NCBI GenBank assembly: GCA_038496445.1
Contig: JALMLS010000329.1
Coordinates: forward strand, 1-64,000
DNA length: 64,000 nucleotides
Source of the DNA: Trichosphaerium sp. ATCC 40318
Lineage: Eukaryota > Protista > Tubulinea
Direction of reading: 5' to 3'
Of the stretch, positions 27,207-31,275 are shown in pieces. The stretch's first letter is position 1, and each line of letters begins with the position of its first letter. The notes under the pieces were generated by a model. The model saw only the letters and a list, made by a program, of their open reading frames with translations, did not search any database and had not been told where the DNA came from. Both the position numbers and the translations under genes were made by a program.

Positions 27207-28511
27207 ATGTCGCTAAGTGAAATACAAACTTTGGCTGATGGTGGCCCGCCAAAGTTGTCTAAACGCAAAGTTGTTGTACGTTTCCATCTATACCTCACAT
27301 CACACAATCCCGTAATTGCAATATAGATGGTTGGAGACGGCGGAGTCGGAAAATCAGCTATAACCATTAGAGTAAGTAATATTAGGTGGACACACCTATT
27401 GCAGCCTTGCTTTCCTAAAATACCTAGTTTACACAGAGCACTTTTGTAGAGGATTATGACCCGTACGTATTTTCATATTTTTAGGTGTAGGTTGTGCTAT
27501 TCGTTTACTGATCAATGACAGAACAATTGAAAACATGTACAGAAAAGAGATTATATTAGAGGATGTGGCAGAAATGCTAGAGATTCTGGACACAGCAGGT
27601 ACGTTTCTACGCATTTCATAAGCTTCTATGCTGTTTGTGCAACTTTTTTATGTTAAAGCTACTCTTACCTTACTCTACAATAGGCCAAGAAGAGTATAGT
27701 GCGTTACGTGATAAATATGTACGCACAAAGTTTCTATCTAATAGCGATACAACTTATTCTACGCGCTGGCAGCTAGGTCTATTGCCCCTTTAACGTTCAT
27801 TTTTGTACCGCTGCTATTTTGGAAGTTACTTTTTACCAACAAACAAGAGCAGAAAATACTGCTTTTGCACCTCGTTCTAGCGTTAATGTCGGTAGATACG
27901 CGCTGGGGATGGTTTTGCAATAGTTTACTCTGTTATATCAAAAAAATCGTTCGGGAAGCTATTGGAATTACGAGAGATTATAAGTGATGTAATCAACCAT
28001 TTTGTGGCAGTTTCTAACTTATTGTTCCGCAGGCTTTAGATTCTGACGAGTTCCCTCACATCCTCATTGGTAAGCGACTCGACAATTTTTTTAAAGGCTT
28101 TGCGTAAATAGCAAACAACAGCTTTTCCAAAAAATCTTTCCAAACTACGCTACTTTGACACTAGTCATTTGGGATTTAATTGTAGTAATTCTTACCTTTT
28201 AAGGAAACAAATGTGATTTGACAGATGTAAAAGAAGTTACAACAGAGGAAGGGCAACAACTTGCCAAGGAATGGGGTTGTCCCTTTATCGAAGTGTCCGC
28301 TAAAACACCCATGAAGTACGCAAACGCGATTGTCATTCTGTTTTAAATTACGTGCTGACATCTGCTTTTTTTTAGCGTTTCTGAAGTATTCACAAGTTTG
28401 ACAAATGAGATACGACTATTTGAAGAGAAACATGGCGATATTAGACAATTACGTGTTCGTCAAACAAACGCGAAAGGAACAAGCTCTGGTGGGTGTTGCA
28501 TAGTGCTGTAG
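27207..28511 (+). CDS. Ras-family small GTPase
   Basis: GDGGVGKSA, YDPTIE, LDTAGQEEYSA, GNKCD, EVSAK and C-terminal CAAX (GCCIVL). Confidence 0.93.
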
Positions 28512-28959
28512 AACGGTTGACACCTGGCTATTTTTCCGTTTAATGAAATCTGAATTCAAAACAAAAAAAACTAACAAATTCACACCCACATTTGATCAAT
28601 ATTGATCATAAAAATCACGCGCCTAGCACTTTGCGCCACATATAGATTGTAAGAGAAAAAAATGAATATGTCTGTATAACTATGATTATTTTTGTGTTCA
28701 TTTCTTTCAGCGTTCTGTTCCTTCGCCATACTGAGAACAAAAAACACGTATCAATGCTTAGCGAGTTTGTACAATTCCAGTAGTCACGTGGCTAATAAGG
28801 CTCTTTTACCAATATATCAAGTTCCAATCAACCAGATTGCAGCAACTACGCGTGGAGAGTTCCTAATACGCTCAATACATTCTCACAGTAGGACATAGAG
28901 GTATACTGTGCAAGGTAGTAGGAGAAAGAGTACAACAACACTAAACGCATTCATACAGT

Positions 28960-31275
28960 ATGCACCTGACTCAATTGCAATTGCTTGTGGTCTATTGTTT
29001 ATTTCTCCTCCCAAAGTACTCTGCTACGCAAATAAACGCTGCTGGTGGAACGTTTGCAGCTCCTATACTTCGATCGTGGATGGCATCGTTTGAATTATTT
29101 GATAGAAACTTTGCCACACCATTCACTTACGAAGGAACTGGAAGCAGCATAGCGAAGGATAGAATAACGCCAAACAGTGTAGTGTGGGCTGGAAGCGATT
29201 CGGAGCTAACTACTTCCCAGTATGCCCAAAACAGCGGTCTTCAAATGTATCCTATTTTAGGCGGTGCTGTATCGGTTGTGGTACGTAGTATTTGCCATTA
29301 GCTCTTTTTAGCGGAGAATTAAACATACGCGTATGTTGTTTGTATCTATTTTATATTGCATCAAAGCGCTGTCATGTTGTATCATCATGCAGTAAAGAAG
29401 CAAATAGGGAGAAACAAGCAAAAACAGTATTCTCATAAAATAGTTTTCTGTCAATTTTCTAAACTGCAATATTCGGATTCTAATTCCAATTATCTTCACA
29501 GGTTCATATTCCAGATTTGGCTATCAACCAGACAATCGTCATAGAGCGCGACGTACTTGTAGACTTATTTAGTGGAGCAATATCTTTTTGGAATGACACG
29601 CGATTGGTGGCTAAAAACCCACTACTCGCTAATGTATCGCATCAAATTATCCCAATAGTTCGGTCAGATGCCTCCGGAACAACATTCGTTTTCCACTCTG
29701 CACTTATATCGTTTTCACCTCCTCTTGGGGCTATGTACGGACCACCAGATGGTAACTTCCCTTTTATGAACCCGAACATTCAAAGATACGAAGGAAACAG
29801 TGGTGTCATGTCGGGCGTTAACATTGTGCCTTACAGTATTGGGTACGTAAGCTACAATGTCTTCTTAGAACTTGGAATATCAACAGTGTCTGCCGCTAGC
29901 CTTATCAACAAACGAGGAGAAACAGTTTCTTACAATCTTGATAGCGCCCAACGAGCGCTAAATGGGGCTGAATTTCAACCCAACTTCTATTCAAGTGTTG
30001 TCATTGATACTAATGTAACAGGTGTTTATCCTATAGCTACATTCACATACGTAATTATTGACAAGGATTGGAATATGCAATGTCAAAATCAAAGAGATAC
30101 ATTAAGATTTTTCACTTGGTGCCTTACGAGTACAGAAGCTTCTAACACTGCGTCCTCTAGAGGATATATACCACTTCCTGAAAGCGTTGCAATGCGTGTT
30201 ATTGACAAATTGCATTTGGTAGAATGTCAAAAACAACTGCTAGTTGGTAGACGTATACTTGGTATGAAGTTTCCAGCAGGGTCAGTAGTTCTTACAGTTG
30301 TTATCGTTATATTATTAGTTTTTACGATGGGTGTACTTGCCGCTTGGGTATGGAACCCACCCCGCCGACATCAAGTCGTACGTCAAAAATTGTTTTTTAA
30401 TGACACCTAATTTCTTGTTTTTTTACCATTCATTTGTAAACCTAAAACTTGATGTAACACCGAATACAGAGTATTGTATTACTTCCGCTAAATTTATTTA
30501 GTTGGTATACGGATATACACTCATTGCCGGTGTTACCCTTGCTATGATCTCCTCTATACTTTGGCTTCTTGAACCTACTTCTACTGCTATTTGTCAATTA
30601 AGGTTGTGGGTTGGGTGTTTATCCGTTTCTTTATTCCTTGGTTCTACGATAGGACGATCTTCAATTGTTTTGAGAATGCTGTCTGTTTTTGTAAGAAAAA
30701 GTGGATACAGCAAACAAAAACGTGGATTGATCTTATTTTTGATAGTACTTGGAGCAATAGTATCAGTACAACTCGTATTACTATGTGTATGGTCTGTGGT
30801 TGATACTTATGAAAGATCATTTGAGAGCACAGATACACTCTCTCTTGAAGCGAACTACACATGCTCATCTAAGCATATGGTTATCTGGGGTACACTAGAA
30901 CTTGTCTATTTCTTTTGTATTAAACTTTGGGGTGCTTTTGTTGTATACTCAACTTGGTCAGTTAAGAGCCGTGTAGTTTCCTCAAGGTGGCTTTTAATGC
31001 ATCTGTACAATTGTGCATTGATATTGGCGGTGGGTACATTGCTTATATTTATTGTTGGTACTTCAGAGTTTGCTATACACCACACAATAAGTGTATCAAT
31101 ACTTGTGTTGGCACAAAGTGCTATTGTTGCTTTCTTGTTTCCTGATCTTATCTTACCTGCACTTACAAAGGCATATGGTAATACTACAGAGAACAAGCCA
31201 AGTGGAAATGGAGGTATTGAACGCTCTCATTCATGTCACATATCACGACAAGATACATCTACAGAAGAAGAATAA
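28960..31275 (+). CDS. Class C (GABA-B/Grl-like) 7TM receptor with extracellular PstS phosphate-binding domain
   Basis: Three exons (~28960-29280, ~29502-30377, ~30502-31275). Signal peptide, then PstS motifs GGTFAAP, GTGSS, AGSD, RSDASGTT, IGYV and YPIATFTY. Seven hydrophobic helices follow, with the class C-like CQLRLW..LSVSLFLG. Confidence 0.85.

Follow-up and report, generated by a model that had tools for sequence, protein, structure and literature searches.

A PstS-type ectodomain joined to a GABA-B-like seven-helix domain in Trichosphaerium: a candidate extracellular phosphate receptor

The detection of external phosphate by eukaryotic microbes is poorly understood, unlike internal sensing through SPX domains. 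In PstS, Asp56 selects protonated phosphate over sulfate. We know of no type II binding protein that drives a class C seven-helix (7TM) domain. One class C G-protein-coupled receptor (GPCR) that is reported to respond directly to extracellular phosphate is the mammalian calcium-sensing receptor (CaSR; Centeno et al., 2019; PMC6795806).

Proteins in which a PstS-type domain and a class C 7TM domain occur together have appeared in several surveys. Krishnan et al. (2012) listed PBP_like_2 on the Glutamate-family receptor SPPG_06488 of Spizellomyces punctatus (PMC3251606). In Plasmodiophora brassicae, proteins with 7tm3 and PBP_like_2 are single coding regions supported by RNA-seq and were read as phosphate transporters (Rolfe et al., 2016; PMC4815078), and PBP_like_2 is among the domain abbreviations of an amoebozoan GPCR survey (Hall et al., 2023). 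The searchable literature yielded such architecture listings and no functional test, either of binding or of signalling, of any PstS–GPCR fusion. Here, we describe a gene of this kind from Trichosphaerium sp. ATCC 40318. It lies in the window, by which we mean the whole stretch of 64,000 nucleotides that was analysed (contig C52 of the assembly).

Gene structure, locus and family spread

The receptor gene occupies positions 28960-31275 of the window on the plus strand. Sequence and open reading frames (ORFs) were read together as three exons separated by two GT-AG introns, both of phase 0. The features of the locus are listed below; the helix limits in exon 2 were transferred from the model of a paralogue.

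28218-28346, plus strand: last exon of a Ras-family small GTPase (Pfam Ras, E = 1e-6), ending about 610 bp upstream of the receptor start codon
28783-28791, plus strand: GTCACGTGG box, about 170 bp upstream of the ATG
28960-29280, plus strand: exon 1, 107 codons, encoding a signal peptide (about residues 1-22) and the opening portion of the PstS domain, in which lie the ligands T31, F32, S62 and D80
29281-29501, plus strand: intron 1, 221 nt, GTACGT...AG, phase 0; in-frame stop at 29299-29301
29502-30377, plus strand: exon 2, 292 codons; remainder of the PstS domain, stalk with conserved Cys, TM1 and the start of TM2
29661-29681, about 30216-30275 and about 30276-30353, plus strand: within exon 2, the RSDASGT motif, the stalk and TM1, respectively
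30378-30501, plus strand: intron 2, 124 nt, GTACGT...AG, phase 0; stop in the frame of exon 2 at 30408-30410
30502-31275, plus strand: exon 3, 257 codons and TAA; TM2-TM7, ECL2 hairpin (about 30811-30867) and a cytosolic tail of about 40 residues

The deduced product has about 656 residues. An earlier note on this DNA had given the gene two introns, and both are sound, with GT-AG borders, a common phase of 0 and early in-frame stops.

We searched the assembly (70.3 Mb in 642 contigs) with PstS and 7tm_3 models. A paralogue of the same architecture is encoded on contig C9 (157047-159002, minus strand; L014:577-2532, minus) by a single intronless ORF of 651 residues, and is 50-65% identical to the window gene over its whole length. 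The window exons were searched individually, with this paralogue serving as a proxy for the full-length protein. Exon 1 is 65% identical to it and ends at paralogue residue 108. Exon 2 is 52% identical to residues 110-401, starting at 109/110 and ending at 401, and exon 3, which is 50% identical to residues 402-639, starts at 402. The ends of exons 1 and 2 (108 to 109/110) and of exons 2 and 3 (401 to 402) thus abut, so that the splice junctions are gapless on the paralogue. Intron 2 falls at the start of TM2, which in the model comprises paralogue residues 399-423, the junction being at 401/402. The same exon 2/3 junction is contiguous in P0005, the closest public relative (40-48% identical).

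These alignments bear on the view that the fusion is an artefact of the gene model, either because two genes (a secreted or single-pass PstS and a six-helix fragment) have been read as one or because the locus is a decaying pseudogene. We consider this very improbable. Since TM1 lies in exon 2 and TM2-TM7 lie in exon 3, neither half of a split gene would encode a whole 7TM domain. No gap occurs at either junction on alignment to a protein encoded in one ORF, nor at that of exons 2 and 3 against P0005. The reading frame is open throughout the three exons, the splice sites are canonical and functional residues are conserved. The earlier proposal of one gene fusing a PstS-type domain to a class C 7TM domain is borne out by the colinearity of the exons with the one-ORF paralogue, and on these comparisons we regard a real, intact three-exon gene as confirmed.

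The neighbours of the gene are ordinary eukaryotic genes, which in addition to the Ras GTPase encode CRAL/TRIO, SCAMP and pentapeptide-repeat proteins; the locus is not part of a phosphate gene cluster. Bacterial contamination at this position is ruled out by the spliceosomal introns and by the eukaryotic neighbours (Ras GTPase, CRAL/TRIO and SCAMP).

The box upstream of the gene had been put forward as a Pho4-like cue. GTCACGTGG is indeed present at 28783, but its reading as such a cue fails. The window contains 46 copies of CACGTG against the 10.6 expected from shuffles (4.3-fold), a count that none of 100 shuffles reached, and GTCACGTG occurs six times against 1.1 expected; the paralogue locus L014 contains neither. 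The excess throughout the window, together with the absence from the paralogue locus, rules out the E-box as a phosphate-specific signal and leaves the link to Pho4 unsupported. CACGTG is a common motif of this genome and is not specific to the receptor gene. The palindrome is found, for example, at 28785, 31483 and 35154 and many times in 44-63 kb, with its highest density in the second half of the window; it may be a general promoter element, a repeat or a site related to methylation.

When the paralogue was used as the query of a full HMMER search against 1.84 billion cluster representatives, 4710 relatives were obtained. Both the PstS part and the 7TM part are present in 44 of the best 150 of these 4710, a sample of which was confirmed by Pfam. 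A word-index protein search with the full-length paralogue returned only four matches, none with 7tm_3. In view of the HMMER result, with its 4710 relatives and many fusions, these four matches reflect the low sensitivity of the method rather than rarity. Full-length fusions are present in the transcriptomes of Stygamoeba regulata, Mayorella sp., Flabellula baltica, Amoeba proteus and Sappinia pedata (amoebozoan fusion transcripts P0020, P0021, P0024, P0011 and P0019) and, since these sequences come from transcriptomes, the fusion is a single mRNA in those five amoebae. The ESM Atlas has clusters labelled with 7tm_3 and PBP_like_2, in which Discosea and Chlorophyta are the commonest taxa. The novelty implied by the earlier note does not survive, since two published reports (PMC3251606, PMC4815078) and no fewer than 44 clusters of public proteins already contain this architecture. 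Judged by sequence, the PstS–7TM design is already recorded in other protists and the window gene is a second paralogue of a recorded family.

The PstS-type head and its phosphate pocket

The head is of the type II fold of PBP_like_2 and PstS. The Pfam PBP_like_2 model matches exon 1 (E = 9e-4) and exon 2 (E = 9e-11; 42.5 bits against a cut-off of 27), and ANF_receptor, the LIVBP-type Venus flytrap, has no match in the window ectodomain. In NCBIfam, exon 2 matches PstS TIGR00975 (E = 2e-37) and exon 1 matches PstS PRK10918 (E = 2e-9); PstS models are the only NCBIfam matches for the window exons. Against the equivalog cut-off of 205 bits for TIGR00975 the exons, scored separately, reach 129 and 29.6 bits and the paralogue reaches 196.9. 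Exon 2 also matches PstS chains in the PDB (E = 3e-18), and PstS from E. coli and other sources is matched by exons 1 and 2.

The paralogue was aligned with 25 public fusion proteins from the HMMER search and with the three window exons. In its AlphaFold2 model (mean pLDDT 85), a head of two lobes is followed by a short stalk containing small strands and by seven long helices formed by residues 368-618, with an ECL2 hairpin. In Foldseek, the head of the model matches E. coli PstS (1IXH-type) with E = 8e-22, a target-normalised TM score of 0.88-0.90 and an r.m.s.d. of 2.8 Å, and the whole model matches GABA-B receptors with E = 2e-9, its 7TM part being the portion that resembles them. At about 52% identity, this predicted fold transfers to the product of the window gene.

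Alignment to E. coli PstS places T10 and F11 at T31 and F32 of the window protein (GTF), S38 at S62 and D56 at D80. R135, D137, S139, G140 and T141 fall in the RSDASGT motif at nucleotides 29661-29681. In the structure-chain alignments and the family alignment all nine phosphate ligands of E. coli PstS are identical in the window gene, so the residues listed in the earlier note were correctly assigned. The pocket columns are also kept across the family. Among 19 full-length fusions, the residue equivalent to R135 is kept in all 19, S38 and D56 in 18 each, G140 in 17 and S139 in 16. The position of T141 is Thr or Ser in 17, that of T10 is Ser or Thr in 16 and that of D137 is Asp or Glu in 16, being Asp in the window gene and Glu in the C9 paralogue. 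Some members of the family, such as P0025 and P0055, have degenerate pockets.

A ligand other than orthophosphate has to be weighed at this point. The same architecture might bind another tetrahedral oxyanion or phosphorylated compound: arsenate, phosphite, pyrophosphate or an organophosphate from prey bacteria. In favour of such a ligand, identity between this head and the PstS family is only 27-28%, the equivalog cut-off is not reached, Glu takes the D137 position in the paralogue and the pockets of P0025 and P0055 are degenerate. Nevertheless, the nine orthophosphate ligands, D56 included, are identical in the window gene and PstS models alone match in NCBIfam. We regard a different ligand as decidedly unlikely and take orthophosphate as the candidate ligand of the window receptor.

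A pair of cysteines links the end of the PstS domain with the stalk (30066-30071 and 30222-30227 in the window; C303 and C351 in the paralogue). It is present in 39-41 of 42 fusions against 14 of 57 short PstS proteins, and also in most of the long, eukaryote-type PstS. This distribution suggests that the pair is probably a branch-specific disulfide that fixes the stalk to the head.

The seven-helix domain and a proposed function

Exon 3 alone matches Pfam 7tm_3 (E = 8e-19; 68.7 bits against a cut-off of 33.5) over profile positions 47-248 of 251. Its best relatives of known structure are GABA-B R1 and R2 (E = 6e-9 and 2e-7), the match to mGluR4 being far weaker. With PBP_like_2 as the head, this upholds the earlier description of a GABA-B-like 7TM domain that carries something other than the usual Venus flytrap. 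The protein has a signal peptide and its N-terminus would lie outside; mapping through the seven-helix paralogue model puts TM1 in exon 2 and the other six helices in exon 3. The window exons are 50-52% identical to the paralogue helices, with no gaps inside them.

Two features of the class C core were compared residue by residue. Firstly, the TM3–ECL2 cysteine pair is present: the Cys residues of ICQLRLW and YTCSS align with the GABA-B R1 cysteines and the pair (C432 and C522) is nearly invariant in the fusion family. Secondly, the PK(x)Y-type motif of TM7 and the TM3/TM6 ionic-lock residues have changed. In the PK motif the Pro is retained and the Lys is replaced by Asp (FPD) on alignment to GABA-B R1. 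Neither ionic-lock position is kept, the TM3 Lys of GABA-B R1 being Arg and the TM6 Asp being Ser. Since PK reads PD in TM7 and the acidic residue of TM6 aligns with Ser, coupling of the window receptor to a G protein is not assured.

It could be argued from these changes that the protein binds phosphate without acting as a GPCR, whether as a membrane-anchored capture device for nearby carriers, as a transporter or through some other signalling route. Neither the PK motif of TM7 nor the acidic residue of TM6 is retained, the tail is short, and on contigs C61 and C177 the same genome encodes PstS surface proteins that are not GPCRs; moreover, the Plasmodiophora fusions were called phosphate transporters (Rolfe et al., 2016; PMC4815078). 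Against this, 7tm_3 is a GPCR fold and G-alpha genes are abundant. To our knowledge, no 7tm_3 domain has transport activity. The TM3–ECL2 disulfide and the GABA-B-like core are kept across very divergent species, which argues that the 7TM domain is more than an anchor. We consider a non-GPCR role unlikely and retain that of a signalling receptor.

PstC (TIGR02138) has no match in the 70-Mb assembly, whereas 14 of 14 control genomes do match. An ABC-importer partner for the PstS head is ruled out by this absence, and the head cannot serve such an importer; several phosphate carriers of the PiT/PHO4 type are present. The assembly has at least 141 matches to 7tm_3 and well over a hundred G-alpha exon matches and, with so many G-alpha genes, G-protein signalling is richly available. 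The class C repertoire of this genome is thus very large; Hall et al. (2023) reported no family 3 GPCRs in Acanthamoeba or Protostelium.

Other PstS-domain loci were noted in the same assembly. On contig C61 (233575-234708, minus strand; L016 and L026) the last exon of a PstS-domain gene encodes a Ser/Thr/Pro-rich stretch and a hydrophobic tail, and the product resembles a phosphate-binding protein of the cell surface, GPI-anchored or single-pass, with no 7TM domain. Contig C177 (16549-24411, minus strand; L025 and L027) carries a run of PstS-like exons with several repeated domains. It resembles public multi-PstS proteins such as P0006, which in 2386 residues combines four PstS domains with Ephrin_rec_like and TRP-like parts. 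An intronless PstS of 349 residues (C640:583-1632; L013), on a contig of 1.9 kb, falls within the bacterial-type clade of the PstS tree and probably belongs to a bacterium, present as a contaminant or an associate, and not to the amoeba.

The window gene is, on this evidence, a reasonable candidate for an extracellular phosphate receptor. We lean slightly towards the reading that it is a surface receptor in which the PstS ectodomain senses phosphate and the 7TM domain signals through G proteins. Ligand, coupling and physiological role are what we infer in the following scheme. After cleavage of the signal peptide, the PstS-fold type II ectodomain would lie outside the cell on a short, Cys-stapled stalk, followed by the GABA-B-like 7TM domain and the short tail. 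Orthophosphate would close the two PstS lobes, and the stalk and the ECL2 hairpin would relay their movement to the 7TM bundle, which could then activate one of the many heterotrimeric G proteins of the amoeba. The signal would report external phosphate for the control of uptake, for feeding or for chemotaxis. A wider proposal is that the whole PstS–7TM family serves free-living protists as a dedicated GPCR for extracellular orthophosphate, in which a disulfide-stapled type II head drives a class C 7TM domain; we put this forward tentatively, at a little short of even chances.

With its fully conserved PstS pocket and its GPCR body, the window receptor offers a concrete candidate for external phosphate sensing that is cheap to test. 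If the proposal is true, a type II binding protein is able to drive a class C 7TM domain, which would then be activated without a classical Venus flytrap, and there would be a molecular entry point to the sensing of outside phosphate in eukaryotic microbes. The family is widespread: amoebae, a plant-pathogenic rhizarian and a chytrid have members, and the clusters in the ESM Atlas point to green algae as well. A positive outcome for one receptor would therefore hold for many organisms, those of phosphate-limited marine and soil settings among them. The window locus itself adds little to this, being a second, intron-containing paralogue with a more canonical pocket (Asp at the D137 position).

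Comparison with known systems

With bacterial PstS (E. coli, PDB entries 1IXH and 2ABH; PstSCAB, PDB entry 9K3S) the window receptor shares the fold, as judged from the paralogue model, and the nine phosphate ligands. It differs in that it is not a free periplasmic protein and has an extra conserved Cys pair and a stalk, in a genome that lacks PstC. It also lies outside the starred clade of short bacterial-type PstS. In the tree of the PstS part (137 rows, quick search) nearly all of these short proteins form their own supported clade, and the fusions are placed outside it with long multi-domain proteins. A single origin of the fusion fits this tree without following from it; nine label changes are needed, of which the starred branches force only one.

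GABA-B and the Dictyostelium Grl receptors have in common with the window receptor the GABA-B-like 7TM core, a short stalk with no cysteine-rich domain and the ECL2 hairpin. Their heads are of the LIVBP/ANF_receptor or BMP type, whereas that of the window receptor is a type II PstS; in addition, its TM7 PK reads PD and it has no long coiled-coil tail. In CaSR, the anion sites are in a classical Venus flytrap and phosphate is inhibitory (PMC6795806). The window receptor has a dedicated, high-specificity phosphate-binding fold in place of the flytrap, and the two heads are analogous rather than homologous.

The nearest likeness is to the fusions of Spizellomyces, Plasmodiophora and the amoebozoans. 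The domain order is the same, the paralogue aligns end to end with them at about 27% identity, and the phosphate-site columns, the stalk Cys pair and the TM3–ECL2 Cys pair are conserved. Within this family the window gene and the C9 paralogue stand apart as a lineage-specific pair, sisters with a support of 99 in the PstS tree. They have the same architecture and differ in that the paralogue has no introns, has Glu at the D137 position and has no CACGTG in its locus.
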